Position numbers and translations under genes: made by a program. From NCBI GenBank assembly GCA_964187785.1, contig OZ076419.1, positions 14,260,001-14,324,000 of the forward strand: a stretch of 64,000 nt of DNA, read 5' to 3'. This document shows positions 24,501-63,639 of this stretch, in pieces; position 1 is the stretch's first letter; each line of letters starts with the position of its first letter. This DNA comes from Amphiscolops sp. MND2022 (Eukaryota). The notes beneath the pieces were generated by a model, which searched no databases, was not told where the DNA came from, and saw only the letters and a program-made list of their open reading frames with translations.

Positions 24501-24525
24501 TCTTGTTCCATCGATTGCAATGGAA

Positions 24526-27885: not shown

Positions 27886-28169
27886 AAGATAGTTTGGTGT
27901 TTCATCTGAGAAACTGTACGTTTAAAATGAAAAACAAATTATTTAATTTAAATTCTTAAACATAGCTCATACCTGATATCCAACTTAAATTACTAATTTA
28001 TTTGAAATTAAATCTATTACTGTAATTATTGAAACACCAAACTATTCGGGAAGAGACTTTGTCAGCAATACTTCAAATCCGGCATCATGTTGATAAAAAG
28101 GAACTTGAGGTTCAGGCCAGATTCAAAATGTTAAAACAAATTTAATCGGCACGAGGAACAGTTATTGAT

Positions 28170-29913: not shown

Positions 29914-30836
29914 AATTACATACTATTTAATCCCCATAGTTTGTTTTCATTCATTCGAATGAGTTATCATAGTCTTATATTATAAACATAACGTTTAACT
30001 GTTCGCGCGAGTTGTTTGAACATATCTTCTCAACTGCAGAAATTTTTTTAGCTACTAGAAGATTGGTTCAAGTTTAATGACAGACAGAAAATTGAAAATA
30101 GATCGCATCGTTTTGGAAAATATTTATTGTCAACTTTCCTGAATTCCAGCAACTTTATTGAGCGATTCATTTTTTAAAAAATTTATGCTACCAGGACTGA
30201 TCAATATTTTCATATACTTTCACGGAGTTCTACAGTTTATTTAAATACTGGCACTAAAAATTACCAGGCAAAAATGACTTCATCGATATTTTGAAGTCAA
30301 TAAGGTTCAATATTGTTTTTTTTCTCAAATCCGTTTTTCTTGATGGTGAAACATTGCAAACATTTTTTATCGATGCCAGAATAGCCTGTGTAGAAGGTTT
30401 TTTGTTTTCCAATGTTTCAATGTTCATTTCAACAATTCACATCTGCAATTCATTCATTTCGCTATCTAGCCGAGTTTAATAATTTTCACGTTTTCTAGAT
30501 ACACTAATGTTACTTCTATGTCAGTAATATGGGCAAAAAAAGTTAGTTGTTTGTTCCATTTTGTCTAATAAGGTATCAAAAAATCATTGCAAACGTAGGT
30601 TGGTATACTTCAGAGAAGAGTCGTTACCAAATGTGGCGTTTGTGGCCGCTTTGTGTCATCTAATTAGTTGTTCTGTGTTTGCACCAACCAGAAACTCCTC
30701 CAGTTGTAACTTCACTAAAGCACTTTAGCATAATATGATCGGATAGGGCTTCAAATTTTAAAAGTCTTTTGTTCCGTTAAAGATCCAGAATAATGACACT
30801 GATCACCCCGCGGATAATAGGAATAATAGGTTGGTA

Positions 30837-33800: not shown

Positions 33801-36645
33801 CGAAGCTTTAATTGAGAAAATTTTATCACTGTTACCATAATCAGTTGTCGAGCTTTTCTGTCGAACCACGGAGAAATTCAGCACAAACTTCAAAAACGTT
33901 TCACAACGTTGCCGTGTGATAGTGGCGGATAGAACGATTGACAGAAAATTGATTCTTCAAACAAAAAAAAATTGACTGGTGCAGATATGGAACGAAATTT
34001 TAACGCGATACCTTTGCCTGATGTTATTTGCCCATGAGGCTGCTGGGAGTTCATCGAAAAATGTCAAACTATATCTTTTGAGAATTTCATAGCTAAAATA
34101 GATCCTCAGTTTCGAAAATTTGCTTTCGATGAATACGATTTGGTAGGCATTTGTCCCAATTACCCTGAAAGATTCAAATTACTTGGAAAGATTGACATCA
34201 AACCTACCATAATTCTCAACGATGATGGAAGTCTGTCTTGCCTCACGTGTTTAAAACATTCTGGTGAATCCCTTCAATATGTACATCCCCCCGAAGCCCC
34301 CTAGTTAGTAGTGTTTCTCCTAACAAGCCGGAACGGCTAGCCTATACACAACAACAGATAAACATTGTGAAGACTGGGAAACCCAAATTCAATTCCATTC
34401 CAGCCACCATATTGAAGAAAGAGGTAGTTACACTGGCATTAGTAGCAGCACGCTTCAGTTCCCAACATTTTTTGGAAAATTCAACACTCCTAACAGATTC
34501 ATTCGAGCACGTTAGTTCCAAAGGAAGATCCGATGTATACCCTCTTGTGGATTACTTTTTTAAAAAACAACATCGTAGACCAAAACTTAGCAGAATTCCT
34601 TTTTAACAGCAATTTGAAACTGACACAAGATGAGATTTTAGCTGCAATCGCCAACACAATATTTCAATGTACGATGCCTTCAGAATGCAAAATCAAATGA
34701 ATTCCAACATTATGATTGGTAGCAGAAGCATGATCGACTAAATTAGGTCACTGTACTGCTCAAAATTGCGAGTTGAGAAACCACTCTGGTATTTATCAAG
34801 TTAACTTTATAAACCATTTCTTTTGATTACATTGAACAAGTTAGATTTGAGTTGATAACTCCTTTGCTCATGAAATGAGTTATTGACTAGAAACTTGTAG
34901 CTATAAGGAATTCTTTGGGTAAAACCTTTTTCACAATTTTCCAGTTTATTCATTTTTTATACAAAATGTTATTTTTCATATGTCCATTTTTTGCATATAC
35001 CCGAAATACATAGAATTAACGAATGTGGTACTGATGTTACGAAGCAACTGCTTCAATCATTGTATGTTCGTTTTAAGCAAACAAACTTCGCCTTTTTCAT
35101 CACCTCCTTTTTTTAAGAACACGTAGACGGTTCTTTTCCATCAATTGCAAGTCCGGTTGTCTTTCGATTGTTTCGGAGAAGCCTTCGTCATTGCGTGTAT
35201 CACAATGTGCTCAATATTCACTACCTTTCTTTTTTAAGCCCTTAATCCGACAGCAAGTTGCTCCACGCATCTTCCGTCAAACGATGATCACGCGTCGAAC
35301 TTGCGCGAGACCATTTCCAACTACATGACGCATGCCGACTCACAGTCGCGTCTGCCTACACCAGGTCCATCTTTCATCCCCATTCCTAACGTCTACCAAT
35401 CCCCTCCTCCGAACTGTCACGATGATCACCTCAACATGCAAAAGAAGTTAAAGATGCATTTGGTCACTGTAATTGGCGATGTTCTGAGTATTCACGATGC
35501 GTCTTTAACTGGCGAAACTTGTGATAAATGTCTGCGAACGTCCCCTCTGTCTCACAAGTTTTTGATCCCTAAACACTGTCAAAAAAAAACAAAAAAATTT
35601 GTCACAAGCTCAACCTAAGCACTTCGCTTAAACTCTGACTCTGCTGCAAAGACTAAATAATCAGTGACAATAGATAGTTCAAAAATGCCTGGCCCAGTGT
35701 ATTGTCAACTTATTGGGTCAACGAAGACGAGGACGAAGCTTTAATTGAGAAAATTTTATCACTGTTACCATAATCAGTTGTCGAGCTTTTCTGTCGAACC
35801 ACGGAGAAATTCAGCACAAACTTCAAAAACGTTTCACAACGTTGCCGTGTGATAGTGGCGGATAGAACGATTGACAGAAAATTGATTCTTCAAACAAAAA
35901 AAAAGAATTGACTGGTGCAGATATGGAACGAAATTTTAACGCGATACCTTTGCCTGATGTTGTTTGCCCATGAGGCTGCTGGGAGTTCATCGAAAAATGT
36001 CAAACTATATCTTTTGAGAATTTCATAGCTAAAATAAATCCTCAGTTTCGAAAATTTGCTTTCGATGAATACGATTTGGTAGGCATTTGTCCCAATTACC
36101 CTGAAGGATTCAAATTACTTGGAAAGATTGACATCAAACCTGCCACAATTCTCAACGATGATGGAAGTCTTACTTGCCTCACGTGTTTAAAACATTCTGG
36201 TGAATCCCTTCGATATGTACAATGCCCCCCGAAGCCCCCTAGTTAGTAGTGTTTCTCCTAACAAGCCGGAACGGCTAGCCTATACACAACAACAGATAAA
36301 CATTGTGAAGACTGGGAAACCCAAATTCAATTCCCATTCCAGCCACCTTATTGAAGAAAGAGGTAGTTACACTGGCATTAGTAGCAGCACGCTTCAGTTC
36401 CCAACATTTTTTGGAAAATTCAACACTCCTAACAGATTTATTCGAGCACGTTAGTTCCAAAGGAAGATCCGATGTATACCCTCTTGTGGATTATTTTTTT
36501 AAAAAACAACATCGTAGACCAAAACTTAGCAGAATTCCTTTTTAACAGCAATTTGAAACTGACACAAGATGAGATTTTAGCTGCAATCGCCAACACAATA
36601 TTTCAATGTACCAGGCCTTCAGAATGCAAAATCAAATGAATTCCA
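30837..36645 (+). repeat. Tandem triplication of the 1.93-kb unit, copy B
   Basis: GAATTCCA at 30837, 32767, 34699 and 36638. Unit-specific variants (TDSFEH in unit 2, TCDKCLRT in unit 3) match copy A. Confidence 0.97.
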
Positions 36646-39600
36646 GTCAGGATAAGGAAGTGTTTCAAATGCCTGTCCCCATTTTTGCCCACCAGCTGCA
36701 TGGTGTGTCACAACATGGATTCAGGCCACAACGACAATTCAGTAACACAAACGAATGTCTCTCTGTTCTGAAGGCTTATCACGTTTCTCACCATCTTTCC
36801 TTTCAACTTTGCGTCAGTCGAGCAATGATGAGATTTGTCGTTTGTCCAAAACTTTTGCTAACCTCGTGACTGCGTCTAGTAGATTTGCTACGACAAACCA
36901 AATTGACCAACTCTTCAGTTTTTGAAAACTTCAGCGTTCACTTCGTTCTCGATGCCACTTCGCTAAGGTTCAAGCATGAGTTTGTGAAAATCTTGAATGT
37001 TCCTGCTGTCACACTACCAACCCGTTCCTTCAACGAAATCTCAACGCCAGCCAGCGCTAGTGACATGATCTTCGTTTTTGCTCCATCGCGAGCGGAACGT
37101 GATGCAAACATACCACCTGACACCATTTTCTGTAACTCATACGTAAACCAACTAGTTTTTTGAGCAAAAACTTCACGAAAGCTGAGTTTTACTGCCGTCA
37201 TTTCAGAACTAACTCTGCTTGGTTCGATTCTTTTACGTGAGATAAGCGTTTAACCAAAACTACCTTTGCAAAGTTTTATGATTTCGCTAGCAAAGGACGT
37301 GGGATTTTGCTGTTCATGAAAAACTGCAAACTTCAGATAACAAACAGATGTTGAACACTTTTTTTTAACCAGTGTTAGTGGTCAGAACATTGCCCCCTGT
37401 TCAAACCACGAGTTTGCTGATTCAAAAAAACCCTTTAGATCCTCTGACTTGCTTCGACCGCTCTTGTAATAACAAAGCCAAATAGGTTTGTCCTAAAGTA
37501 GATTGTACAAGCGGAGTGTGTAAAAAACACAGTGAACAAATGATCGACGATTCAAACAATTGTGCCATCACTAGTGAAAAAACACGGTTTGTTTAACAAT
37601 TCGCCGAACATATCGACAATCCAAGTGATTCAGTAACAGACAACGAAACTGTCATGAAAGGGCATAATCTTTCTTCAAGTGAATTAGAGATAATTTTTGA
37701 ACCCGATGACTACTTGACAAGGTCCATTGATTCAAACAACCCAGCGATTCCTATTTCTTCAAGTGCTGGTGTTCCTTCAGTTACGTATCAGTTAACCACA
37801 ACCATCAAGTACTTAAGAAAGTTCTTTTGAACAATTTTTTGAACATACTTCAAAGAACCAAAGCACCCCTCTGGACAACGAATGCGCACACAAATTTCAT
37901 ACAAAGCATCGTTAGTCGAATACCGAACACGTCCGTGCCCCTTCTTTACCCAGAATCACTTTTATTCCTTGGCATTTTTTGGAAACAATAATAAGATGGT
38001 TGTTTCCCAGGCGCTATACCGTCTTTCTTACTGCAATCAGACAAATTGAACAGAAAATTGGGCTTCGCGACAGTAACCAACCACCTTTGGAGTAGATTGA
38101 CAAATGGCGCACTCTTAAAATCATCCAGTTTGGGCTATGCAAGTTTGGCGTTTGATATAAAAATGATTCAAGAGCTCAATAAGTCCCACAGTAACCTCAT
38201 TGTTTTCAAACGAGGATTCGAGGATTACCTCCGAGATGACGAAGCTCTCAAAATGCCCAGCTGCGCAATCAAGTGAGACGGACTTGATAGCTCGAAAAGA
38301 GTACAGGAGGTTGCAGCCGAATGTGCAGAAGAAAGCCCGCATTACTTTTTTACTTACTTGTTCAATGGCAGGGCATTTTGGTATCCGACCTCTTTTTGAA
38401 GCAATAAACAAAACGTATGCTTGCGAGAACAAGGACGTGTATGAAGCAGTTGTCCAAAGTTTCATGGAATTGTTTGTTGAAAGGCCATTGGGTCAAGTTT
38501 CACGCATTTGGTGGCGATACGAAGTTCAAACGAGTCAAAGTAACTTGGCTCATATCCACTACTTACTTTGGGTCAATGAACTGAAATCGTCAGAGTCCTT
38601 CCAGAATCGAGTTGTGCTTAAAAAGTGCCAACTTTTGCTCTCTTGAAGACACTTTCCTAAAGACAGTAGGCCTTGTTAGAGAAACTGACCATGCTTTCAG
38701 TTTTTATAAAGATGCCGTAAATATACATTACCACTCTTGCGCAGCAACAAACTTCAGATGCCATAAGAGAACAGACGAAAAAGGACAAAGCTATTGCCGC
38801 TACCCTACTTACCCAACAATCTCACAGTATCATTTGGAAGAAGTGGACGTCAACCACTCCGAAAGGTTTCCATGTTCTGTCACTATGCCTACTCGCAAAT
38901 GAAAAGATCGGGTACAGCAACACGATGTGTGTCACAGACGACCTGAAAGCTGGGCAATGGCTATACCCCAGTCAAAGAAATCAAAACGTAACAGCGATGA
39001 ATTCTCACATTTTCGTACTGACAGAGACTCAAAACAACCTTTTAATCTGCGAGAAGTATCTCTCGGCAAGATATATCGCAAAATATGCTGCTGGAGTAGA
39101 AGAGAAAGCAAACGTTTTAATTAGCGCTGCCAAACACGAAAACACGCTACAAGTTGACGTTGGAGAAATACATAATAGCAAAATTGCCAGCGTCCAACAT
39201 CGTTTACAACGCGAACAAGAAAATCGGAGAAAAAGTTTCTGCCAAGCCAAACACATCTGCATTACTGAATGTTACTCGCACCTTTTCGATCTTCCTTTTG
39301 TAAAATCATCCTTCAGCAGTGTCTGCATCAACACGAACGAAATGGAATGCAAGCCTGGTCCTAAACTAGCAACGCAAAGTAGAACTTTGTATCCCACAAT
39401 CAACGGCAGGCACACGGACATCGAATTTGATAAACATTCGCGACACTCTTCCCTTTTGGCGTTAGTTCACGGGAAGTCAAAAGGCTACAATACAACTACA
39501 CCTCGAAAGTAGCATTTCTGTTTGCAATATTACAGCTTACAGTTGTAGACCACCAGAACTGCTTTCCCTTCGAAATCCCAAAGATTATTTCTAGCTAATA

Positions 39601-42200
39601 GAACGCCACGATATCAGATAAAACTGAACATCCAGAAACTACAACAATTGTTCACTAGGAACAGTATGGTCTGGATAGATGGGTTCGGAAAGCAAATTTT
39701 TACAAGGAAGAAACGCATTAGCCACTTCTTAGACTATTTGCGAAACTCCGATTCACAATGTGCTGTTCACCTGAGGACGATGTTCCGAGCGGAATTGGAC
39801 CTTTTGCCTCTCACATCTGCACATGATGACAGCAGAAGCAACGCTGTTGTTTGTTTCTCAAAAATTTATCCAGCAGACGCAAGAAAGTTTCTAGTTCATC
39901 TTCTACTCTCAATGGGTCATTTTGATACAGAGTTAGACCTTTTCAATTGCAACAATTTGTGGGATAGCTTCAAAAACCCTGGACTAAGGACAAATACAAC
40001 AACCAAAGAAAACATATTGGATATCACTCGAAATTACATTCTTGAACAGGCCCAATTTCTGCCGGGTTCTACGAGAATGTTTGACCAAATGTCGTCCAAT
40101 GCTTCCAGCTGTTAACAGACTTTTTTGAGAAGGGCTCAATTTCCTACATGCAGCCACCCCGTGTTTTGTTGTCTTCAATCAAAAATTGTATGAATGACAA
40201 GACCCAAACTTTTCAACAAATCGCATGAACATTGCCAAAGGTTTGGTTGCGTCTGGAAAAGTTGAAAATAGCCCAAATGAACAAATGATCGCAGAAGCGA
40301 CTACGTCGTCCGTTGTTTGTTTCTCTGCGACAATCACCAAACTGACCAGTCAAAGCAATTCTGCCTTTGAGAAACAATTGAATGTACTGAAGTTTATCGA
40401 CGTAATTGACTGTTACCGATCTGGTGCAACAACATTCATTCCACATCATTTTGTTTTAGGAAAACCGGGAACTGGGAACTCCACATTCACTCTTGTTGCC
40501 CTCTATTACTCAATGTGCAAGGGTCTCAGTTGCATGGTTACAACAGTAGCTGGCGAAAAAGAGGCACAGTTTGGTGGACTGCATCTACATCGGCTCATCC
40601 CCCTCCCCATCAACACAAAATTGCTAGTGATGAAACAGGTTGAATCGACAGTCCAAAGACTCTATTGCGAACCAATGAGATTGATCCTCTTGAAACGTTT
40701 AGACGCCTTGATCATAGACGAAATTGGTATGCTGAATTCTGAGCAATGGTGCGTATTGGATCATGTGCTCCGGTTCTATAACAATTGCAACCTTCCAATG
40801 GGTGGAGTTTTAGTCATCGGCAACGGAGATCCCAAACAACTGGGACCACCTGCGGGACCCCTCCTTTGGATTCCCCCTGTACAATTTACCAACTTCACGT
40901 TGTTTTATTTGTCGGAATACGTTCGAATGGTGAATCCTCTGGGGACGCGAGTTTTGTCTTTGTTGGATAGTGTTCAAATAACTGAAACTGAGACGAGTGA
41001 AATTGTACGTAACTCAGAAGAAAGCTGTCGAATCGTAGGGAACTGGGAAGACATTAATGACCAAGCAATTCTGAAGGTACTACCAACTAAGCAGGCCGAA
41101 AGAAAACTAGTGCAAAAACATCAGCAATTTATTCAATGTTCACATCGAGAATATGTGTTACACAAATCTGTTGATGAAAATTCGAGGCGAGTTCAGAACC
41201 TTTGGGTTTCAACTCAGGACGTCAAAAGTGTTGCACATTTAAATAAAACTTGTTTGGAACCTGATTCGCTACTACTTTATGAAGGAGCCTCAATGAGAAT
41301 GACTCGCAAAATTATAGATTTACATGTCACCCAAGGTCAACTTTGTGTTGTGAAAAAAGTTCCCCAGTCCAACAGTAACACTATTGAGATGTACGTAGCC
41401 CCACCGTGTGTACGCACGTTGCCACCTGTTGGAGCTGATGGAAACCGTAGTTACGATTTGTTTGGATGGCAAAATATAATAGTAAAGAAGATCGAAGGCC
41501 TTCTTCATAGTTTTCGTTATCTTCCTCACTCCGTCGTATACAGTTTCCTCTGAAGCCTTTTCAAGCTGCGACATTTCATTAGTGCATAGGAGATGATGTG
41601 CCTCTCCTAGCAACTCAAATTGCCACCAATGATCCGTCGGAACGGTCGATGTTCAAGCTTTCGGAAAAAAAACCAGCTTTTGGTTTTGGTTAGCCGCGTC
41701 GAAGCATTAAAGCATTTAAGCTTCTTCGGCTCAAAATCAAGCAGCTTGAAAACAATTGAAGCAATTTGATACAACACTAGCCAGTGGAATTATTTCATCC
41801 ACGATTTTGTGGAATCGCTAGCTAATCAGAACCCCTCTGTCGCCGTAACAACATTTTCCATCTCGCAACTTGTATGTGCCATGTCACGCCAAACGCTCCC
41901 TGAAGACGATTGTGCAACAGTTTACTGCTTCATGTCCCTAAAAGATCAGCCGTGGTAATATAGGTAGATGTGTCAATATTCGGAAAGAAATAGAACGAGC
42001 AAACTCTTATTGTGCTGAGAGTCCGAAATCGACTGTTACAAAAAACCTTGGGCTCTCCTTTGTGCTGCTTTTGAGCCAAGTGTTTCTACTACAGATGCTT
42101 CCACAATCGCTTTGGAGAGTAACTGGTTCAACGCCGTACACTGTTTGCAAAGAAAAACCCTAATGATGTTTTCCAATGTTTACGGGATGTAACTGAACGT
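31438..42200 (+). mobile_element. E1 copy B: decayed Rep-helicase-GIY-YIG element
   Basis: Duplicate of 1634-12400: Rep about 38200-39100, helicase about 40225-41735, GIY-YIG about 41905-42145. Shares the inactivating stops and frameshifts I checked. Confidence 0.88.
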
Positions 42201-42842
42201 GATACTACTTTTCATAGAAGCATCAATTTTGTGGCTTTCGTGGACAGTCAACGACGTCTTTGTGGTTATCTTTAAGATAATCTTTTCTAAGCAGTTTTAT
42301 GTCGAAATCTCCTGAAAAAATGATGTAAAATGTTCATAACAATAATAACTCATTGTGTGTTATATTTGTTTACGTTTGTTCAAGCACGAATAAGTGCCAA
42401 CTTTGAAAATCGGAATACAAAACTCTCACAAAAAAGAATCATTAAGATCAAACTGCCGAGAGTTTGAATAAAAAACAAATTATCAGTTGAAAATATCTGT
42501 TGCAACATACCCAATTTTTTAAATAGACTGTTAACACATAGTAATGTAACATATTATTTCCAGTGTATCATCAATGCACGTGTTCGTCGTTTTTCAAAAA
42601 TTTATCATCATAAAGTCATGTTCAATTGCGGAAGGATGAATCGTTTTTGAATTTGTAACAATTATGCTAACTCGTCTTTATGAATTGTTCTTTATCGCTT
42701 TTTTAAACCTTTCAAATCTGCTAAGAATATATTGCCCACCTTCGGCTAATTATTATTGCCCTAAAAATGTCTTTTACGCTCTTTTGATATTGAAGAGCCC
42801 ACAACTTTTTGAAACACTATGTTATGTCCTCACTCGTCTGTT

Positions 42843-42881
42843 GAACACTGATTGGCTTTCTCTGGCAGCCAATCAGTGTTC
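42843..42881. other. Perfect 15-bp stem-loop, copy B
   Basis: Same sequence as 13036-13074. Confidence 0.9.
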
Positions 42882-45010
42882 CTCGGCTGACCTTGTTCAA
42901 TCTGATACCTTTTGTTAGAAGCCGTCTTCTGTTCCATTGCGTTATTTGCTGCGATACGCATCGTTAAAGCTGAATTAACTACTTTCAAGAGCTCATTGAT
43001 TTTGACTTAGCAAATCGTTCCTAGATTGTTATGTGTAAATGATTACTTTGCCGGTTGTCTGGCTCAATAGAACACTTAATCTGTTGGGCGCTAACTGTGA
43101 CCGGCTCAAGTGTCATCAATTACAAAGAATACTTTCGGACGGGTTTCCACATCGAGAGAAATCTTTCAATTGATGCTAGACTGTCAGTCGTTCAACGCCA
43201 AACCTTGTGTCCTTTCCCATATGATCTTTCTTCGTGTGATTTTGTCTTTGTTTGGCAGCTTGTTTCGAGTTTCTGGCTATGCTCATTTGCTGGAATGACT
43301 TCGTGGTGCAAAATGGTCCTAAATCGTTATGTGTAAATGATGGCATCACCGGTAGTCTGGCTCGACAGAGCACACAATCTGTTTGGCGCTAACAGTGGCT
43401 CACATGTCATCAAACACACAGTATAATTTCAGACCGGATTCCACACCGAATTGATTTACATCAATTGTACTAGGCCAACACTCTATTCCAATGTTGCCAA
43501 ACTACCCAAACAATCATAAATTGTCCTAATATATCATCGCACAGAATTTAGCAGGGTACTTGCATAGCTTCGGATTCTTTTCAGAATTATGTTCGAAGAT
43601 GAGAAACCAGCAAATGGAACTACTTTTGCTCTCAAGTCAACAAACACGAAAAAGTAATTTCTTTCTAAGACAGTAATCTAAAAAATTAGGGAGTTTTTAA
43701 GGCTTAGGTAATCTCGGAATTAAAATGTTAATACGAAGGATGTCTGGCTGAGTGTTATATATGAAATAGTCAAAAACAAATTTAGGTCTGAAATTTAGGA
43801 ATGAAATTTTGTCCCGCGAGAGATGTTGCATTACAAAGTTCTTAATTTTCAAAGTGACAGTCAGACCCACCCAGAAGCAAGTTAAAATGCGATTTGGTCA
43901 TCAAGTGAATCTTTTTCGTTCATCTTCACTACTGAAGTGCTGTACAGTGTGCAAGGAACATATACGTGAAGTTTTGTTAATTTTCCAAACAAATGCTTAT
44001 AACAATTAACCTTCACATCACCAAAGGTCGTTCGTGGTGCGGGCCTTCTGATTACTTCCGAGGTATACTCGGATCTGATCAGTAAAACGAGAAAACCACA
44101 AAAAGGTCGTTCAAGCTGCGGGCCGACATTCCCGTGAGGGGTGTTGAAACGAGAATACCGGTTTCTGAAGTTATCACAAGGTTACAGGGCATATAATTGG
44201 GTTGACCAGGCGACCGGGTAGGCCTGGCACGCTTTCCGGCACCGTGTTTCCTGAAGCTGCTGAGATAGGTAAGTAGATTTACGAGGAGTCATTTTGGTAT
44301 ATAGTTAAATATACTTTTTCACTAAGTTAATTTATCTTGGGGTTAACTATTCGCAGATGTTTCATTTTACTTTTATTTTTTCTCTCACGGCGTTTAACAT
44401 TACGAAGTTTCAATTTTTTCTCATCATACCATTGTTACACAATTACGAAATATCTAATTAAATGATACCAATTGGTTTTTGCTCATGGGCATCAGTGCTT
44501 CTATTTGAAAAATTCATGCCTGTCTTTAACAGTTCCCAAGAGTCATAAAAGTAAAATTTTGTTTGGATAAACAACTTTTGTGTTTATACAGGTGGCTCAG
44601 TGTTTCAAAGTCGCGAACAGAACGGTGATTCGAAGTCATTGGCAGATGCCAAAGTGCTCATAAAGAGCAGTTTATATATACTGCTCATTTAATGCATCAT
44701 ATACAGTTATGATATATGTTACCTTCGTTAAATTTTAATAGTACTTGAAAAAGATACTGTTACTCACTCTATCGTCTTTTGTTTTCCTGCTCTAATCAGT
44801 ATAGAGAGTTTAAATTGTCGTTAAACGGAAAAAACTATCATCAATTCTAGAAGTTCCCTCAAAATTCAGTAGTAACCTTTTTATTTACGTTCGGCTTCTT
44901 CCACGTTATTAGTTGACTTTAATCATCGACGCAATTTTCGGTATCTATTTTATGATTTCATCGACTTCAAACAATCCATTCACTTACAGTAATTAGTTTT
45001 GTAGATAGCC

Positions 45011-45881
45011 ATGTCAACTTCAAAACTTATGCTCATCAGCCACTCCATCGCGCGAAACGTTGTCTTGCCCCAAACAAAAATAGAATCCTTCAGTGGTGCC
45101 CGTGCTGGTGACGAGAGGCTTCATCGGTGCATCAGTGAGTGGCACGTTAGGAGACACCAACAAGGAATCCTCTCCCTAGGAGGCAATGGTTTAAAAGAAT
45201 GGAGTGGTAGACCGGCCGACACGCCGAAGAAGGTAATATTTTGAAAAAAAAATTCTAATAATTGTTTCCTTTTTCATAAACTTCCGGTAAAGGATAACAG
45301 TTTCTGAGCTTTCAACTATTGCAAGTTTTTATGCAATAAAAATTTTGCTCTCCCATAACAGGCTTTGATTGAACTCTGGGTGGCACTTTGTGTCTACCTA
45401 TGATGGGTTCAGTCACGGCCACAATCGCCGATATTTTAAAATTGAGGTTATTTTTTGTCTTGACTTAGATAGAACTCTAGGTGGCTTATTGTGTCAACCC
45501 ACGAAAAGTTCAATCCCAATTTCATTCTCTGTTATTTCCACTCACCTGTCTAATTGATTGTTTGCTTCAAGTCAGCGAACACATTTTCTCTCTAGTGAGA
45601 ATTTTGAGTGCCAAAGTTGATTTTGTCCATGTGATAGCCGTAGTTAGGCGAATAGATGAGGAGTTTCCTGAATTAAAAACAAGCCCACATTCAAGCGATC
45701 AACAAATTCTTACAAAAATGCCAGAATTTTTGACTACAATTACCATGGAGTGGGCTCTAAGTTAAATTCTTGTACGATATTGAAAGAGGATGGAGTCCAC
45801 TTGACGAAGAATGGAGTGTATAATTTTCAAGCATTGATTAGAGCAAAAATTAGCAAAATTTATCACAATTTCATTGAATGA
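45011..45881 (+). pseudogene. SGNH/GDSL hydrolase pseudogene 2, copy B
   Basis: Duplicate of 15204-16072; TGA at 45879-45881. Confidence 0.7.
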
Positions 45882-46465
45882 CTTTTGTTTCTGTTTTCAT
45901 TAACCTGTCATTTTATACATTGTGAGTTTTAACTGATCAACCTTTTTAGCATTTATATTGTGAATTGTGGTTTATGATGAATTTCATTTGGGTTGTTTTA
46001 GACCTGTAATTTTATACAATGTTGATTTTTAACTGATAGCCCTTTTTAGCATTCATACTGGGAAATTATGATTTATGTTGAATTCATTTGCATTGTTTTT
46101 AGCCCTTTCATTGTTTAAGTGGGATGGTACTGATTTATTGTTAAAGTTCCAATCAGTCACTTTGTATTTTAAAATGACTGTTTTTTAATTCACTATTCCA
46201 TCATCAAGTTTCTCAATGTTTTCTACTCAGTCGTTGCCAAGTTCTCCATCAAACAATTTTCGAACTTTGAAAGCAAATTCTCAGTTTTTAAACATTTTCG
46301 TTCACGTATACTTGAAGCTTTTATGATGATAAACCATGGAAATCTTTTTTCAGAGTTACTTGAGTGTTTCCATGCAATGTTATAAGGTTAGCCATTATTT
46401 TGCATCTGTGGTTCCCTATTTCTCCAATGGTACATTACTGTCGACGATTTGTCGTATAATACGGA

Positions 46466-46938
46466 TGTCAACCCACGATAGCTAAGCTTAGGTGGCATTT
46501 CCGTGTTTACTTGGCAATCACTTTGATTGGAAATATCATTATCCAATACACAGAGATTGGATTTCACACAGATGTTGACCCATGATAGCGAAACTTAAGT
46601 GGCATTTCTGTATTATTTTTGGTTACTTTATAAAAAAGTTAACGGTGAGTTTTTTCAACTGTTGTTATTTTACCGGTTTTTATACTTCGTTTATCGTACC
46701 ATATTTTATTTTCGTTGTTATTGCTGCTTCTTCGCAATTACGCCATCAGGTTATCTTCTTTATTATCATAGTCTACCCATAAAAGCTTCAGCTTAGGTGG
46801 CATCTGATATTTCCATCACGTTACCTAGTTTAGTTATGGATTAATACTTCTTTTCCTCATATTTCGTGCTCATGAGGCATTGGATACTTTCATCATTGAG
46901 TTATGTCTACCCATAACAGCATGCGCTTAGGTGGCATT
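46466..46938 (+). repeat. Array of four spaced 34-35 bp direct repeats just upstream of the E3 ORF
   Basis: tgtcaacccacgatagctaagcttaggtggcatt (46466-46499), tgttgacccatgatagcgaaacttaagtggcatt (46573-46606), agtctacccataaaagcttcagcttaggtggcatc (46770-46804), tgtctacccataacagcatgcgcttaggtggcatt (46904-46938). Spacers of 73, 163 and 99 nt show no obvious similarity. Confidence 0.88.
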
Positions 46939-49900
46939 GAATGTTAATTATCTTGAGTGTCGTAATTAGTGTCCAAATTGATGAGAATGACGCGAAGACA
47001 ATTCAGAAGGAATGCGCAAACAGGTCGCTTTCAAAGAGTTTCGAATGGCGATAGCCCCGAAAATGAGGATGCGTTTGTTGTTGAGGGCTCGTCACAAATA
47101 CCCCAGTGTTTACATGTTGATTACAGTGATGTAATTGATGTCGGGTTAATCGACAGTGTTGACGACATTTCCGATCGAAACGCCAACGATGATATTCCTC
47201 TTTTTGATCGTTCCCATCAGTGCACTTTCAGTGTTTTTCCGTTTCTTCGAAAACAGTTTCTTGTCACCTGGTCAAAGAGGTCTTTGCATAGCTGATCCCG
47301 ATGCTCGAGGACTATGTTACGACTGTTTGAGGAATAGCACGCTTTCTTATCCACTTCAATTCAAAATATATGTTTTGGGTCCCCTGGTTCCCAACTGGAA
47401 GTTTGGGAAAAAAATTGATATTGGTCTTACCAGACAACACCAGTCTATCCATGTTAGTTCTGAATGTGAACGATACCTCAAATGGAAAGCAAATGGAAAT
47501 TCGCGTGGCCAGCTGTCTTGAGTACTTTCATTTTCCAATGTAATGGCCAATATTTATTTCACCCGAAGAGTTTCGAGAGTCCTGGAGTGTTGCAGCGTCA
47601 CTTAAATCCTTGCACAATCTCTCTGGTCCCACTTTGTTTCAAGATTTTTCTATCAAGTTCAAAGAGTACATGGATATTCTAATCGAATACTCTGCTTACA
47701 ATTTGAAGTATATGCTAAATGATTATGCTTTCCCTGTTGTCAAATGTCCCGCTGGTTGTTCGACACTTTTGAAAAACTGTTCCAACGTATCCTTTGTTCT
47801 TTGTTCATTTGCTAAACTCATGGTTCCCCAATTTCTGTTCATTTGGAGCGAACTCAGAAAAAACTCACTGCTATGCGCTCCGATTTCTTGCAAAACTGTT
47901 TGCATTTGAATACATTTCTGACAGCACCGCACTTGGAAGTTAATTCTAATGGTTTGTTTCTCAAAACCTGTTCAGTGCACACCGATTTGCTGAAGAAGAA
48001 AGTTCATGTTCTCACATCGCTGTTGGGAAATCTTCTACATACACATTGCGATAGCTTAGCTCCGTTAACAACTAAAGCAAGAAATGCGACCTCATTGAGC
48101 GTGGGAAATTTTTCTCATACACATTCCATGGCTACAAGTAAAGGTAGTTTCGAAGGTATAAGTTTGTTGCAGTTCACTAGCGCCAGGCATTTTAACATGA
48201 AAAGTGAGTTATTGTTGCCGAATTCGGAAACTTTGTTCTCACAAAACCGTGTAGACGTTCGAAACTTACTTATTAGGCTTCTCAATGACAATGAGATTAA
48301 TCAATTCTTCTTAAACTCAATCGTGTCAGTCCATTCGCCTGTCCCTGATAATGTATTACAGCAACACATGTCCACTGATTCCAGTTTAACTTTTTTGCTT
48401 TTCTTGGACAAAAATAAAGTAGCAAATTATCGATTCCTGCTTCCCTACTAATTTGGCATCCAGACTTCATACTTCAAACAACTCCTGAAGATGCCTGTAG
48501 ATTTTTAATTCATAGAAGTTTGGGAGTTACTTTCATTGTTTTCCTTCTGAGTAATTTAGAGTTTTTCGGAGATTTGTTGTGGCAGAATATTAACAGTCAA
48601 AATCTACTGCTTTGTTTGAATCGTTTGCCGCGACTTCACTCAAATCGTCTTCACTTGAACTCTCCTTGTGTTGACTCCACCTTGAACGAAATGCAAATTT
48701 TTCATGCAATAGAAGATTTGTGTCGTCACAATTTGTTAACAATTGTCACCCAAGTGTTTGATCGTACAGATTCTTGCATCACCCTTCATTTGTCAGCTCG
48801 TAATTTGCTTCGATATGATATTTGCGATTTGTTTCCTTCCTTAGATTCTTCTCCATTGATAATGATTGCCATCGTTTGTACTGACAACGACCGACGTTGT
48901 GAACTACCACTGTCTGTTACCACTCAACAAGGCTCCTATTCTTCAGTTGTTGTCACTGAACTCAATATATCTAATGTAGCCTTTCGTTACAGCGGAAGAT
49001 TCCCAGGGTGGTGGCACGTTTCGTTTCCTTCTTTCATTCTCCTTAAAGAAGACGTTAATGTGATCAAACAGTTTAGTAGAAATTGGTATGTTGTTATATA
49101 TTTGACTGATTACCAAAGAGATTCCAGAGAGCAGTCACTGATGTTTTTCGGTGGTCTCCAAACATTTATTGCCTTTGTCTGTGGACATGAAGTCTTGACT
49201 GTCGTATCGCGACATGTAAAAACAAGACTGCTTGACGATGCCCAAAGGACACCTGTTCATCATCACTTTGTAATCGCCAATTCAAAACGCTTTCCCAAGT
49301 TGATAGTAGTAAATTCATTGACTCGATGCCTTCCACTTCATCTTTGGTTTGTTTGTTCGAAGACGAAAATCTTTCCGATACTGATACAGACATTTCTTTT
49401 TCCTCCCATGAAGAAACACTGTCATCGCCTTCTTTTGTTGGAATGCAGAAGCAGGTTTGAAAGAAGCAGGTTTGCCTTTCCAAGCTGCAGCAGAAACGGA
49501 AGCGAACTAGAGGAGCGTCATGATGCTGGAGCCGCTCCACTTCACTTATTAGTAAATGGTGTTTTGAGTGCATTCAAAGGAGCACAATTTCCTATTTTCC
49601 TTTCGAAACGTTACCTTCGATCCTTCCAGAACTTTGCTGCGTCTAATCCAGGAGAAGCGGTGTCCCTTTTACTAGCGGAAGCTTTACTGTCACCGAGCAT
49701 CTTCTTCAATCAACTTGCTGATGGATCTTTCACCGGTGGTCTATCGTATTTTCTATTTGGCGACAAACAAGATAATCATTTGTTTGGATTTCAATGTTTC
49801 CATGAGCACGTTTTAGCACGGATTACGAATCTAGAGTTGCCGGTGTCTCCAAATCGCAACTACCTTTTTTTATCTGAGGTTTTATTGAACATAATTCTTC

Positions 49901-50040
49901 GTATTACAACAACAAGCCACTTCTTCAAACGCGGCGTGCAAAACATTCAAGTCATCGGGAACAAAATCTGTGCTTTGTGAAATAACTTTGTCTTCAACCT
50001 TTCCAATTCTTGAAGAAATGTAGCCGAACTCGGAGAAGCC

Positions 50041-50845
50041 ATGAAGTCGGAAAAACCACACATTTTTGTAACTTTTAATTGGAATATGAAAAAACATTTT
50101 GGGATATCTACCCCCATAGGCGCTATTGGAGCCATGTTTCCGGACAAAACATCCGAAGAGTACAAGGCCACAGTTCAACTCTTCATGCCACTTATGATGC
50201 AGATGTGGCATGAAACTGTGACAAATTTAATTGAATATTTAATGAAGTCTTCTGAGCGCATTCTTGGTCACATTGTTAAAATCTGGAGACGAGCGGAATT
50301 CCAGGACTCTGTGGCCAATTTCCCTCATTATCACATCCTTCTTTGGTTGCTCGATGACATAAAATGCCTGGAGAGTTTAATAAAATCTACCAAAAAACAT
50401 TTTTACCACGCTTTCAAGGACATTTTCCGTTCCAACTTTAGAATCATTAACAGCTTGGACGAGATCAACGAGATTTATGACTTATTTGTGTCCCTCCAGT
50501 CTCATGATTGCTCGTCGTGTCGCAAAAAAAAGAGATTCAACCGGAAAAAACTGTCGCAGTCAACTGTATCTCCCATCAGAAAATTTCTGGCAGAGAGACA
50601 CTCCTCAACAATATTCTAAAGAACCTGTTTCTATCCTCAAAAAGTTGCAACTCACTAACGATTTTAATTATGATCCAACGAGAGAACTTAAGTGTCAGAA
50701 GTATCAGTACCCATCCACCGTTGGTGAGCACATATTTCCCAACTCGGTTGAATTATTTGCACTTACACTAAGTGGCAATGTTCAGATTATCACTGAGAAT
50801 TTTTGTTTCAAATACTTGAACAAGTATGCTGCTGGAAAAAAAACA
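50041..50845 (+). pseudogene. HUH (Y2) Rep domain of E3
   Basis: Motif 1 KPHIFVTFNWNMKKHFG, motif 2 RRAEFQDSVANFPHYHILLW, SHDCSSC, motif 3 KYLNKYAAG. Confidence 0.9.
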
Positions 50846-52229
50846 CGCAACAGTTGAAATCAAAGCTGGCTCTTCTGAAAATGCTTTCACCATGACCGCC
50901 CCCGAACTCCATAATGCAAACATAACGGGATCAGTTTTACGCGAAAAAAGGAAACAACAGGAAAGTAGAGATGTTGCTTCTATTTCTGCTCTTCAGGTTT
51001 CGCAAACTGAATTTCTTTGGTGGATGCAAAAGCTGCCTGTTGTGATCACGATCATTGAATTTATTCACGTTCCATCCATCGCGTTAGAATATAGGGGTGG
51101 CAAATTTTTCCAGACTCCAAGGCGGTAGGTATACCAATTCTTCAGGTAGTGCCAATGACGTTTTGAATGTATGTGAGCAATTGAACTTCCCACAACACAA
51201 TTGTTTTAGCATGCGTCGAGGATGCTTCTAATTCACTTTTCAGCACCAAAAAAGTTACTTTGTTTTTCCATTAGACCGCTTGAACTAATGTTTGTGGATC
51301 AGCTGAAACCATATTTCAAACTTTTTGTTCGCCAACCTGCCAAAAAAGCACAGAATGTTCAGTCCTCTCTTTTAACCAAAACGCCGAGGCCTTGGGTTGA
51401 TGCTACTGGTTCCGTTTTTAAAATACGATCTACTGCTTTTGACCAGCTTCAAGTATGGTTCAATACCTTGTCAAGCCAATCGTCACCGACATTAGATCAT
51501 TTTCGTTCCATTTTGCGTCGCTTGAATCAACCAGATTATTCTAGTACGTATGTGTTCGACAGCAGTTGTATTTCGTCTTGTCCACCGGAAATTGTTTTTT
51601 CGAAAGTTTATCCAAAAAGCCAGCTGAACTTTCTACTTCATTTACTGTACACGATGGGTCATTTCAGCACTGAATTGGACTTGTTCTCGGCTTCCAGTTT
51701 ACGATAGTGTTTTATTGGCGCTCAAGTGTTACCTTCATCACATGTATTTGATCAATCCCACAATGTTAACCTTTTGAACGCTATTGAGGCGTTTTGAACC
51801 TTAACCTTTTGAACGTTAACCTTTTTAACGCTGTTACGTCTTGGAGGAGTCGAAATTTCTTCCTGGAGGCAATATTTTTTTTCCTCCCGGTTAGTTTTTG
51901 CTGCTCAGGCTATTGACGCTCTTGGGCTTCACGACAGCATAAGCAGTAATTGTTTCCTTGGTGTTTTGATGAAATACCGTACTGATAATTCTGAACAGCA
52001 CGTATTAAATTGTCTGACAACATCTGAGATCTTCTTTATCAAAGGTTGAAACCTCCTAAAGTTACCAAAGTTCCAGCTGCTCGGGCAACTCAACCCTCTG
52101 GACATTGGGTTCCATTCCTCGTGAAACTATCTTCTCAATCGGATCGATCGTTCAATGAACAAGCTACATTGATAGATGCCATGGTTAAAATGATAGATAA
52201 CGTGATACATTCACGCACGCCCTTCAAAT

Positions 52230-53475
52230 GTCAACATTTATTGGGAAAACCTGGATCTGGTAAAAGTCATATAACTTCCATCGCTTTGTTATATGCCATG
52301 ACGAATGGTCTTCAATGATATGTAACGATTTTAGCCTCCCGTCGCGCATCTCATTGTAACTGCGATCATATTCATCGAATTTTCTGCATAAATCCTTCCG
52401 AAAAGGCGGATCCTAACACAGCTGCTGAAACAGCTCTGAAAAAGATGAACTATCATCCTGAAAAGGCTTTAATGATGTCGCTGAATAAATTGGTCATTAA
52501 AGAAATTGGGTTACTGAGCAGCGAGCTTCTGGTGACAATGAATTTGATACTGCAAAACGTCAGACAAAACCAGTTATTCTTTGGCGGTATATTTGTTATC
52601 GCTAACGGCGACACCAATCAATTGCCTAATATTGATGGTTCGATATTTTTCTGTCAACGACATTTTTCACGTTTGAAACCCACTATTTAACTACATTGGT
52701 TCAAATGCTAGACCCAATTGGTCAACGTTTACTTGAACTCATGAAACAACGGCCAATACCTGAAGCTGATGTAAACAGTATTGTTCGAATTATTCGAGAC
52801 AATTGCACTTTCGTACCAAATTGGGACTCTGTTGATGATTCTTCCATCATGAAAGTTTTCGGTAGACGCGAAGCTGAGCGAGAAGCGATGATTCGTCGCC
52901 AGACTTCCATCTCATCATCTGGCCAGACCTTTTACGAAATTTTTGCCGATGACGAAGTTTGCAATAGTGCCAGTAATAATTGGATTTCCGCAAACGATGA
53001 CGTTTCTACATTCCTTAACTCTGAATGCAGAGAACCTCGAAAAGTTATTGTGAAGGTGGAATCTGTTGTTAGACTTACAATTATTACTGAAAATTGCTCA
53101 CAATGCGAAATTTGTTGGAGACCTACCGTCAAATGGAAATTCCAGTTTGCTTCTCTACATTGCGCCGGAAAATTATTCAATTGCAACTCCGGATTTGTTT
53201 ACCCAAAAACTTTATCTATCGTGGCGTTCCATTCGCCTGCGCAAAGTTACGGGTTTTGTTCACAAGTGGGGCAAATCATCTGTGCGAAGGATTCAAATTC
53301 CTGTTACAAATTACGTCGCCCTCACTGTCCATAATCTAAGGGGTAACACCTTTGCAAAGATCGCCACTCAATTGTCTGTTCGAGAGAAAAAATATAGTCT
53401 TTAGTTACCCCCTCAGTTATGTATCATCGTCAGTCGTGTCCGTGATTTGAAAGACCGCGTGTTCGTCGGTGACCA
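52230..53475 (+). pseudogene. PIF1-family helicase domain of E3
   Basis: Walker A GKPGSGKS (52244-52267), LVIKEIGLL, FGGIFVIANGDTNQLPNI, RRIQIPVTNYVALTVHNLRGNT, QLCIIVSRVRDL. Confidence 0.92.
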
Positions 53476-53651
53476 GTTAGTTCTTTTCTGTTTTCCTTGT
53501 TTTCCCTTACGTGTTTTTTTCTCAACAAAACATGACCCATTTAACCTCAGTTAGCATTTTCTATCTCCGTTTTCCAATAATATTGTTGACGCTTTTTATG
53601 TAACGTGTTATTCTATTTTCATCATTCAATTTCATCAAGATGTTTGTTTAG
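53476..53651 (+). other. Predicted 176-nt GT-AG intron between helicase and GIY-YIG in E3
   Basis: GAC CA|gttagt ... pyrimidine-rich ... gtttag|A GAT GAA ACA. Splicing gives VFVGDQDETCRSTASIL in frame and removes an in-frame stop. Confidence 0.7.
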
Positions 53652-54040
53652 AGATGAAACATGTCGATCAACTGCCTCCATTCTGATGAAAACAAGTCAC
53701 AATGAATTGGAAGTCAACAATAGGCTTTTAATGCTTCGACGAAAGGGATCGTTTCCTGGAACCCAAGTCCATTGGCCACAATTGAATTATGTCCCTGTTA
53801 GAGTAACGATTCCCGAAGTTGTCAACGGATTCGTATACGTTCTTGTCAGTCTGAAAGACAAGTCTTTCAAAACTGTTTACGTTGGTCAAACCAAACGCAG
53901 TGTCCTTCTGAGGCTACAAGAACACAATTCTGGTCATGGCAGCTTTCACATTACCCGTCCACCGAAGACCCTGGTCTCTTGATGCTTTCGCCTACAGTTT
54001 CAACAATGATTCCGACAAACTTTTATTGATGCATGTGTAT
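53652..54040 (+). pseudogene. SLX1-like GIY-YIG endonuclease domain of E3
   Basis: GFVYVLVSLKDKSFKTVYVGQTKRSVLLRLQEHNSGHG, then after a frameshift RPWSLDAFAYSF. Confidence 0.88.
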
Positions 54041-54679
54041 TTTTAAACATTCGCTCTCATTTGTTTACATATTAATTCCACTTAAGGTATTTTACATAGA
54101 TGCGAGCGTGCGGGAGCTTTTGCGACCGCTTAGCGAGCCTAATGGTTCCTTTTTTCCGTTACCTTTCCACGGAATCCTTTCTGAAAAGTTAGTTACTTCG
54201 GTCCTTGGTTGATGAAAATGGACGCACTTGAAATACGGTTCATTTAATAGAATAGTCATTAGCAATACTTTGTTGCATCTGATGAAGTTCCATACCCTGT
54301 ATCGAGACTGCAATTTAGATACGATTACACATGATATTTGTAAAATTTTCTATACAATTACTGAAGCGTAGCTCCATCGAAGTGTTTTCATTGAACATTC
54401 CTAATCCCCTACTTTTTCATTCGTTTTCAATGAATATATTCCGACAACTTTCTTTTCGTAACATCAGCTTGTTTTCAATTCATAACGTTGCTTTGTTTTA
54501 AGAAAGATGACTTCTGGATACAAAAACAATCGACAAACCATTCGCAGATGTAGTGCTCAGTGTTGAGCAACGATTTGAGAGACATTTCTACAATGATATT
54601 ATAAGTGAAGGAGTGGAATTGCCGGCGAGATTTAAACTGAAATGTGTCTACATATATGCTACGACTAGCGTAAAAAAAT

Positions 54680-55351
54680 AAACTACTACAAACCAGCCAG
54701 AAATTCACTTAAGTCTAAAAATCAGGTAGTCAATGCGTATGATCGATTCATCGTCCTTGGAGTTGAGCGCTCCAATCATGTCCTTCTAACTTACACGCAG
54801 ACCGCTCAGGAAAACAGACGGATTTTATGCAATAGTCAGAATATAGAACCCGGTACCCTTGTCTGGGTACTTTGTCCGAAGGTTATCTCATAGGTACTCA
54901 AAATCCGTTAGTCCGAATTGGAGACCCTCTCATTCCAACCTACCGCAGAATCATTCACAAAGCACCTCCTGTGGATGTTAATCTGCCAAGTTACCTTTTC
55001 TTTGATTTTGTCCCAACAAATTTCAGAATCATACAGGCCGTACCCAAAGACAACGTATGCAGTGGAAAACTCTGTGATGCCCAAGGGACAAATCCTTGTC
55101 CGTGCATCGTCGCGGAAAGTGAAAAACATTGGGCAATAACATTCTGGCTGACCTGCAATGAGCTGAGTGAGCGGGTGACTGGAGAAAAATGCATGGAAAT
55201 AACTTCCAAGTCAATGACGAAAAAGTTTGTTCATACTAACAAACGCACATTCGCGTATGACATTTCAAATGCTATTAGCGTGCTGCCCCTAACCGCTGAA
55301 CAGGAAAGAATGATGTACGGCCAGCTTAACAATGACAATGGTAACAATTAA
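54680..55351 (+). pseudogene. Frameshifted ORF with a four-Cys cluster (CSGKLCDAQGTNPCPC); function unknown
   Basis: YYKPARNSLKSKNQVVNAYDRFIVLG...EPGTLVWVLCPKV, then a frameshift near 54885 into the 159-aa ORF. GC content is higher than the flanks. Confidence 0.5.
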
Positions 55352-61972: not shown

Positions 61973-62671
61973 TGATTAACATGTACACAATTCAGTGTTT
62001 ATAAATAGGCCCCTCCGGCGCACACTATTTCTGCTTTAATCTTTCATTAATAATAGAATCATATCTGGAATACAAATACAATCCTGTTTAATCATTTAGC
62101 GCATAATTAACCACTGTACCAGTTTATACCGCCTTTAAATCTGTTCGGACTAAAGCAAATATAACTACTAAGCGTAGACGAAGTTTTGCATTCGCATTTG
62201 AATGTAGGCGAAGCTCTCGACGAACGAATAATTCACACTCATTCGCTTCATCTCAATAACTCGGCGCACTAAAGCATAATTACGAACATTCCCTCGCTTC
62301 ACCTCAATGACGTCAGCGTACGAATGCACAAATACCACTGGCTCGTTCCATCGCACGAGAATTGAATTGTCGTCGGCAGCTTGAGAAATTTAATTCTCAC
62401 GCTTAAAGTCACTGCCGAACAAATATCTGAATTATTCAGTATCGTGCGAATAATTTTACTGAAAAAAAAGGTAGACATCTTAAGGTTTCAATAATATTCC
62501 TGCTACCGCAGAAATAATAAAAAGCGAACTATTACAAAACGATTAGAAAAGATTTTGGAACCTACGTGCTGAGTCTCCTACGAAGAAAGGCTGTCGAAAG
62601 AGAATTTTAAACTCAAAATGTCATCTTTGTTTGAATTGAATTGAATTGAGAAGTTGTGAGGGGAGACTAAC

Positions 62672-62843
62672 TTCAGTCCAAGTGTCCTGGTAGGGGTCGT
62701 ATTCCTCGGTGATGGAGAGTGGTTTGTGTCCGTCGTGGCCCCCCAGACAGTAGATGCGGTTGCCCAGCACCCCCACACACGCACTGTCCCGCCCCACGCC
62801 CAGACACGAAATGTACGTCCACACGTTCTCTTTGCAGTCGTAT
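62672..62843 (-). CDS. Internal exon of a host kelch-repeat (KLHL-like) gene
   Basis: Minus strand: tttttag|A TAC GAC TGC...ACT GAA|gttagt. Translates YDCKENVWTYISCLGVGRDSACVGVLGNRIYCLGGHDGHKPLSITEEYDPYQDTWTE, a complete kelch repeat (GG, Y, W). GC-rich relative to flanks. Confidence 0.88.
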
Positions 62844-63639
62844 CTAAAAACAGCACAAAACGAATGAGCAGGAAAGGACAAAAAAAGATGTAAAAGAAAC
62901 CACAAGTTAGTAGAAGCCAGCACCGATGGGGTCATCTTAGTGGGGGCTTGTTTGTCAAAGATAAAACATGGATCGAATCGAAGGATCGGATCAAAATGAT
63001 GACACACGAATAGAATAGCGAGATTTAAAGAGGAGTTCATTGGGTTTTTTTTAGTTTTGCCAATTTGTTTTTCGAAACGTTCTGAAAACCACTTTTTTGG
63101 AAATTTCTGACTGTTTTCGACAGTTATGTCAAGTTTTGAATTGTTTACATTTAACGCAACTTATATGATACATTGTTGTAGCTCTGAGTTTTTTGTACTC
63201 GATTAAAAAGTCTAGGCGAACTGCTCAGATATAATATGCACGTTGTTAGGCCGCGTTTTGAAAGATTGAGTTCGAATACCTCAGCTCTAATCTTTGCTCT
63301 AATGTCTGGACAGTTTGTCTACTGCGTTGCTATATCAAGTTAAGCCTTATGTTGATGTATACCAGCTATACCCTCTGTCGATACACGGGACAAGATACCA
63401 TCTTCCATTAGCTGTAAAACTTTCTCCACGTTTTGAACTTGACTATGGAAATAGGTCAGTATTAGTTGAAATTACAGTTATCACAAGTTTTTAAGAAATT
63501 GTTGGATTTAAATACAAACAAACCGGGAACGGCACAAGTCGGCCCAATATCTAAGGCTCAAAAATAGCAAAAGGACTTCAAATTGTCAAGTATTCTCTTT
63601 TAAAGTACCTGAAAAAGCAAAAGTTGGACCGAATTGGCG

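Follow-up and report, generated by a model that had tools for sequence, protein, structure and literature searches.

The 64-kb window analyzed here (Amphiscolops sp. MND2022, assembly GCA_964187785.1, contig OZ076419.1, positions 14,260,001 to 14,324,000) contains four copies of Helitron-like elements, designated E1, E2, E1′, and E3 in order along the sequence, all of which lie on the + strand. Each retains traces of a transposase gene in which a PIF1-type helicase is followed directly by a nuclease domain of the GIY-YIG type. The window is eukaryotic DNA with a G+C content of 30–42% and contains no N, and a Rfam scan of its whole length gave no match. E2 and E3 are collinear and share 30–57% amino-acid identity; E1, of which E1′ is a second copy, represents a separate sublineage. 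The positions of all features are collected in Table 1.

E3 was mapped by tblastn with P0014, the closest intact relative of E2 and E3. Residues 129–2189 of this protein align to window positions 47309–53476, through at least 12 frame changes and 13 in-frame stops, and the alignment picks up again at 53653, on the relative's second exon. Pfam matches on the + strand of E3 follow in the order Helitron_like_N (E 4e-5), PIF1 (E 2e-5), and GIY-YIG (PF01541, E 2.5e-4), each of them near or below cut-off because this copy is broken. The initial annotation, made from the sequence alone, had assigned the element to positions 46969–54060. This span does correspond to the E3 transposase gene, with coding homology from 47309 to 54045, but the remnant of a second gene carries the element further, to 55348. 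No known domain was found in the N-terminal region of E3 (46969–49292). The Rep domain that follows bears both an HUH motif and a two-tyrosine (Y2) motif, and the helicase, which maps in three frames, retains its Walker A sequence; its motif II (52490–52510) reads KEIG instead of DEIG, an inactivating substitution.

Helicase and nuclease of E3 are separated by a phase-2 GT–AG intron, and exon 2 is back in phase once it is removed, just as had been proposed. The matching intron of an intact relative of the P0014 family is 67 nt long (locus L003, 14567–14633) and has the identical position and phase. There, the TAA from the GTAAGT donor ends the called open reading frame (ORF), and the GIY-YIG exon continues in the same phase after the intron. 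E2 shows the same helicase–intron–nuclease layout with a mutated splice donor. In the E2/E3 sublineage, a conserved phase-2 intron thus places the nuclease on an exon of its own, the second. The motifs VYVGQT, QEHN, and RPW that had been read from the E3 exon are all present, the last of them (within RRPWSL) behind a frameshift; the catalytic Y, Y, R, H, and N are kept, and the Glu position is lost.

Table 1. Features of the four Helitron-like elements and their surroundings, in window coordinates.
Feature	Position	Strand	Description
E3 transposase gene	46969-54060	+	Pseudogenised Rep + PIF1 + GIY-YIG; coding homology 47309-54045
E3 N-terminal region	46969-49292	+	ORF start 46969; P0014 residues 129-804 map to 47309-49292; frameshifts and stops
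E3 Rep (HUH, two-tyrosine)	49504-50857	+	P0014 residues 870-1326; Helitron_like_N
E3 HUH motif	50320-50346	+	FPHYHILLW, read from sequence
E3 Y2 motif	50813-50839	+	YLNKYAAGK, read from sequence
E3 PIF1-type helicase	52034-53475	+	P0014 residues 1703-2189, in three frames
E3 Walker A	52244-52267	+	GKPGSGKS, read from sequence
E3 intron	53476-53651	+	Phase 2, GT..AG, 176 nt; GTTAGT...TTTAG, exon 2 back in phase
E3 SLX1-type GIY-YIG exon	53652-54045	+	Aligned to L003 exon 2; frameshift between 53940 and 53962
E3 nuclease motifs	53827-53850; 53875-53892; 53917-53934	+	GFVYVLVS; VYVGQT; QEHNSG; read from sequence
E3 RRPWSL	53963-53980	+	Behind frameshift
E3 GIY-YIG profile matches	53767-53961; 53939-54013	+	E 4e-16; E 2.6e-4
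E2	20653-28546	+	Same sublineage as E3, older copy; GIY-YIG remnants 28158-28438
E2 GIY-YIG profile matches	28158-28259 and 28289-28438	+	E 8e-9
E1	1709-16549	+	P0181-like sublineage; coding homology 1709-12339; presumed 3′ end 16549
E1 GIY-YIG profile match	12034-12144	+	E 2e-5
E1′	31514-46358	+	Second E1 copy; coding homology 31514-42144; GIY-YIG tail 41839-42144
E1′ GIY-YIG profile match	41839-41949	+	E 2e-5
Repeat upstream of E3	46461-46937	+	Four motif copies of 33-47 nt ending in GCTTAGGTGGCAT; starts 46461, 46568, 46771, 46905; between E1′ end and E3 ORF
Second element gene remnant	54529-55348	+	Cys-motif protein; 38-56% identical to 436-aa ORF downstream of L003 transposase

The other copies show the same succession of domains in a more or less decayed form. 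Over 16.5 kb (window positions 1–16549 and 29810–46358, with 31 mismatches and 14 gaps), the identity between E1 and E1′ is 99.69%, and the three elements initially described have to be counted as four. The two sequences part after 16549 and 46358, where their right flanks differ, and the left end is obscured by the window edge. Since they carry frameshifts and stops in common, a dead element was copied, either through mobilisation in trans or by segmental duplication. The E1 helicase occupies frame 2 (10415–11713) and the tail frame 1 (11737–12333), with four in-frame stops in the latter; the passage from helicase to nuclease within a single frame, broken by just one stop, that was first described is therefore not found. 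Within the degenerate GIY-YIG tail (12034–12339), the equivalent of the RPW motif is KKPWALL (12235–12255), not the QPW that had been taken for it. The Rep motifs of E1 read AHIH and YIAKYAAG, and its Walker A sequence (10655–10678) is GKPGTGNS, in which an inactivating substitution replaces Lys with Asn. A 1.93-kb sequence present three times in tandem in each copy (1015–6800 and 30819–36600) proved to be the triplicated N-terminal coding part of the E1 transposase (P0181 residues 28–455), and its reading as a satellite was rejected. E2 has an internal duplication in the Rep region, where P0014 residues 1073–1154 are matched twice (23435–23950 and 24633–24887).

A GIY-YIG profile was built from the relatives alone, with the window row removed, and run on all six-frame fragments of the window. 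Significant matches (E 4e-16 to 2e-5) are found at the four element tails and nowhere else. The GIY-YIG domain directly after PIF1 that was originally noted in E1, E2, and E3 therefore exists, well beyond what chance would give.

Using the E1 helicase ORF as query, an exhaustive HMMER search returned 1087 proteins (E <= 1e-3), of which the best 150 are mostly 2000–2800 residues long, with the helicase near residue 1700–2200 followed by a further ~250 residues. Relatives, which were counted as clusters at 50% identity, are present in at least four datasets (ENA ERZ25074608, Logan ERR11809032 and SRR26424594, and JGI 3300056626). Of the 124 in which a complete helicase is followed by 130 residues or more, scored by the family hidden Markov model, 115 contain the GIY-YIG domain, mostly in single ORFs of 2200–2800 residues. 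Intact relatives thus go on past the helicase, including P0014, the only subfamily in which the called ORF stops there and which continues in the spliced second exon. In their tail, PF01541 lies above cut-off, after Helitron_like_N and PIF1. Helitron_like_N is itself above cut-off in P0008 and P0003, PF05970 (PIF1) is found in E1, E3, and relatives, and by sequence the closest entries in the PDB are structures of PIF1. In a Rep alignment of 25 relatives, H247, H249, Y418, and Y422 are invariant. Some members carry an in-frame OTU protease at the N-terminus, and one JGI relative is labelled "predicted GIY-YIG superfamily endonuclease." The transposase of this lineage accordingly has the order OTU (in some members), long linker, HUH-Y2 Rep, PIF1, and SLX1-type GIY-YIG. 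The fusion is kept across relatives with helicase identities of only 25–35%. No apurinic endonuclease (APE) domain (Exo_endo_phos; PF03372, PF14529) was present in any Pfam scan or precomputed domain list of the relatives, which agrees with the earlier suggestion that GIY-YIG stands in place of APE; neither did any domain scan of the relatives reveal a reverse transcriptase, Rep and PIF1 being found instead.

By profile and predicted fold, the nuclease belongs to the SLX1 type of GIY-YIG domains, far from UvrC. An alignment of 42 nuclease sequences displays the motifs GxVYxLvS, YIGeT, RL..HNsG, RPW, and FE.W, and the family profile matches SLX1 structures with E values of 2e-15 to 4e-13, compared with 3e-7 for bacterial UPF0213 and 0.5 for UvrC. 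The best fold matches of an AlphaFold model of the domain (mean predicted local distance difference test, pLDDT, 85) are Slx1 and At-HIGLE (E 6e-6 to 1e-3), with UvrC at 0.035. The alignment and the model contain no RING domain after the nuclease core; the remaining tail of ~50 residues is helical and has one conserved Cys. NCBIfam gave nothing useful on the nuclease tail.

In 85 of 131 relatives, all six catalytic positions (Y-Y-R-H-N-E) are intact. In a midpoint-rooted helicase tree of 138 rows, catalytically intact domains sit on both sides of the root, and the degenerate sites need at least nine independent changes. The nuclease is therefore ancestral to the clade, usually under selection, and repeatedly inactivated, consistent with the initial view of an ancestral fusion as opposed to a chance neighbour. 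These numbers also suggest that nuclease activity would be usual in the lineage, not universal. P0181, an intact relative from the E1 lineage, has F-A-T-K-N-E at the six positions in a full-length ORF that is present in several copies. The E1 lineage seems to have given up nuclease activity and kept the domain.

Protein clusters of relatives comprise up to 165 members, and in several families, copies at different loci are 98.6–99.96% identical over 14–26 kb with common boundaries. Judged by these near-identical multi-kilobase copies, such families are recently mobile. Autonomous relatives measure 19–26 kb and are followed by head-to-tail units of ~1.3–2 kb that open with the same boundary motif. 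This motif, GCTAGGTGG, is found on the coding strand at every unit boundary in the relatives, both of the 19–26-kb elements and of the ~2-kb tandem units after them; in the form GCTAGGTG[GC] it marks boundaries in L008 (743, 26493), L005 (244, 19228, 20499), L006 (1021, 21237, 23213, 25184), and L004 (13909, 15891). The boundary may represent a candidate Rep nick region. The P0014 and P0181 families have a 3′ subterminal hairpin, and the 3′ end of E1 reads ...AAATCTTT. In one well-bounded relative family (P0001), no inverted repeats of >=8 nt join both ends. Traits by which Helentrons are recognized include inverted repeats in subterminal position, a palindrome at either end, and insertion in TT.

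Two further observations concern the ends of the relatives. Each copy is flanked by sequence that resembles the 3′ or 5′ end of another member of its family. Immediately beyond the 3′ boundary (L006 21250–21330, L004 13925–14000, L007 14705–14780), there are two hairpins with a conserved GGGTAGGGTCCTG loop, in which pairing is kept despite different stems, a pattern suggestive of a covarying structure at the terminus.

In the window, decay has gone so far that no ends are visible in the copies, except for the 3′ break of E1/E1′ at 16549/46358. The terminal motif of the relatives was not found at the other ends of the window elements and was seen upstream of E3 only. The repeat at this position has the form ACCCAYRAWAGC-N4-GCTTAGGTGGCAT, with a core that resembles GCTAGGTGG, and an 11-mer occurs there in three exact copies, a number reached in 0 of 100 shuffles. 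These may be candidate 5′-terminal repeats of E3 or repeats resembling an origin or nick site. The 5′ regions of E2 and E3 share no similarity. The common orientation of the four elements, with the E1 copies ending 0.6–4 kb upstream of a P0014-like element, echoes the head-to-tail layout of the relatives.

Homologues of the second gene, the remnant of which follows E3, are found also in loci of the P0001 and P0008 families, and thus in three relative families in all. The encoded protein has no Pfam match, and its AlphaFold model is unusable (pLDDT 32). The L003 locus (ERZ25074608 ctg177350_370x_c) is a 49.5-kb contig with one P0014-family copy that was called circular by the assembler; its coverage of 370x, compared with 75–114x for others, could reflect a collapsed tandem array or an extrachromosomal circle. 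At L003 16203–16433, about 1 kb downstream of the real exon, the C-terminal half of the GIY-YIG exon is partially repeated. A Kelch-repeat exon on the − strand of the window (62621–63040; PF01344, E 4e-17) is presumably part of a host gene.

Taken together, E3, E2, E1, and E1′ are very probably dead autonomous Helitron-like transposons from a large, deeply diverged lineage that carries an ancestral SLX1-type nuclease for a putative second DNA cut. In Helraiser, as described in the reviews cited for it, Rep nicks the DNA and becomes covalently attached to the 5′ end, while unwinding by the helicase proceeds in the 5′ to 3′ direction. By analogy, the Rep domain of the present lineage would nick the element strand, PIF1 would unwind it, and the GIY-YIG domain would supply a further DNA cut. 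The likeliest such cut would be a nick in the target or complementary strand or the cleavage of a flap or branched intermediate that arises from strand displacement. Cutting of flaps or branches is proposed because SLX1 cuts such structures and because the domain occupies the position of APE in Helentrons, for which this same role is assumed.

Two findings weigh against this interpretation. All copies in the window are pseudogenes, and catalytic residues have been lost at least nine times in the wider lineage, including in full-length multi-copy lineages (P0181/P0182 in L005, the lineage of E1). The repeated loss indicates that the cut is not indispensable for every lineage. It is conceivable, if rather improbable, that the domain persists chiefly in the capacity of a structural or DNA-binding module, for instance for branched or hairpin DNA at the element ends, and that cutting is secondary or dispensable. 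Degenerate lineages of the F-A-T-K-N-E kind do retain the fold, the P-W motif, and full-length ORFs, as such a module would. Binding alone, however, would not call for the full set of catalytic residues that most members retain.

Somewhat less probable again is that the domain is a passenger, that is, a fragment of a host SLX1-type gene that was captured once and plays no role in transposition; gene capture is common in Helitrons. "Captured" is the term that HELIANO applies to the published case; moreover, the domain is closest to eukaryotic SLX1, lacks the RING part of that protein, and has decayed catalytic residues in at least nine sublineages that keep long ORFs. A neutral passenger would nevertheless not survive with its six catalytic residues kept in 65% of relatives despite 25–35% helicase identity, and the domain retains the same position and reading (or spliced) frame in 115 of 124 relatives. 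We consider it very unlikely that these sequences form a host multigene family of domesticated helicase–nucleases and not transposons. The long intact ORFs and the lack of an empty-site definition for the termini would be compatible with host genes, but the invariant HUH/Y2 catalytic motifs of Rep, the near-identical 14–26-kb copies with common boundaries at different loci, the clusters of up to 165 members, and the decayed copies in the window speak against host genes. A separate GIY-YIG gene or pseudogene that merely came to lie downstream of a Helitron helicase, as the 176-nt distance and the stops between the E3 parts and the Pfam E value of 2.5e-4 might by themselves suggest, is refuted by the conserved intron that makes up this distance, by the arrangement common to the four window copies and to >100 relatives as single ORFs, by the count of 115 in 124, and by the confinement of profile matches to the four tails.

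Rep and helicase are generally regarded as sufficient for Helitron-group elements, and to our knowledge, the APE of Helentrons was until now the single nuclease known to be fused to a Rep–helicase (RepHel) transposase. That a second, unrelated nuclease occupies the same position throughout a large clade argues for a genuine and recurring need, in some rolling-circle transposons, for an additional cut in DNA. The choice between APE and GIY-YIG parallels that in retroelements, which use either one or the other. Within the present lineage, the catalytically degenerate branches provide natural controls for the purpose of the cut, and there are intact, recently mobile elements suited to a transposition assay, as with Helraiser. 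Helitron annotation probably under-detects the lineage because its Pfam Rep matches lie near or below cut-off.

In the full-text literature, the combination of RepHel and GIY-YIG was found in HELIANO alone, with Repbase and Dfam outside the search, and in the literature searched, the architecture was thus not catalogued as a Helitron subgroup. According to that article (PMC11417382), HelenSM92 of Sphagnum magellanicum is a single moss family with a "captured" GIY-YIG domain; it was assigned to HLE2 and has terminal inverted repeats and insertion in TT. The article's text on 20 stably included domains leaves GIY-YIG unnamed. HelenSM92 is the only published Helitron-like family with GIY-YIG that we found, and it is compared here by description only. 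In contrast to this single family, the clade for which the domain described here is ancestral numbers 115 or more clusters at 50% identity.

Helentrons are HLE2 elements with a Rep-Hel-APE transposase (Poulter 2003; Thomas et al. 2014, PMC4067079). The present lineage shares with them a giant single-ORF RepHel protein, an extra nuclease fused after PIF1, an association with OTU, and large elements with extra ORFs and tandem repeats. It differs in that an SLX1-type GIY-YIG occupies the position of APE and that OTU is in frame at the N-terminus. The Rep motif EFQxx.GN[LAF]PHxH, which has two extra residues, matches neither the Helentron signature RGSPHxH nor the Helitron signature RGLPHxH (Thomas et al. 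2014, PMC4067079). A search of eight N-terminal regions (E up to 0.05) gave no match to DUF6570, the domain by which HELIANO marks HLE2, and further word-index searches for Helitron proteins returned lineage members only, none of them APE-bearing or named.

The nuclease has the GxVY, YIGxT, RL..HN, RPW, and FE.W motifs in common with SLX1 (PDB: 4xlg, 6sei, 7cq2) and HIGLE (PDB: 7wme). Unlike SLX1, it is devoid of a RING/zinc-finger C-terminal domain and is part of a transposase, not a stand-alone repair protein. SLX1 proper also has a partner, SLX4. The lineage resembles Penelope-like retroelements in being a mobile element with a C-terminal GIY-YIG where related elements use APE, but it has no reverse transcriptase, and its nuclease is closest to SLX1.

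As in Helraiser (HLE1, PDB: 7lcc), an HUH-Y2 Rep precedes PIF1, and the three Rep catalytic motifs are collinear. Helraiser itself matches weakly, with E 1.5e-4 for the helicase (worse than cellular PIF1s) and E 0.019 for the Rep profile, and it lacks the N-terminal extension of ~1000 residues, the two extra HUH residues, and the nuclease tail. CTAG, a form of the CTRR 3′ end of canonical Helitrons, lies within the boundary motif of the relatives, and a 5′-TC start is not evident. With HUH/Y2 Rep and PIF1 in one protein, the lineage is, as judged from sequence, Helitron-like and apparently distinct from canonical HLE1 Helitrons. Tentatively, it might even stand apart from HLE1 and HLE2 alike, as a third deep lineage of rolling-circle transposons in eukaryotes, although we regard this as doubtful; its markers would be the EFQxx.GNxPHxH motif, the ancestral SLX1-type nuclease, elements of 19–26 kb, and GCTAGGTGG with head-to-tail units. 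If so, its nick site and insertion rule would be unlike those of known Helitrons, which follow A|T or T|T.

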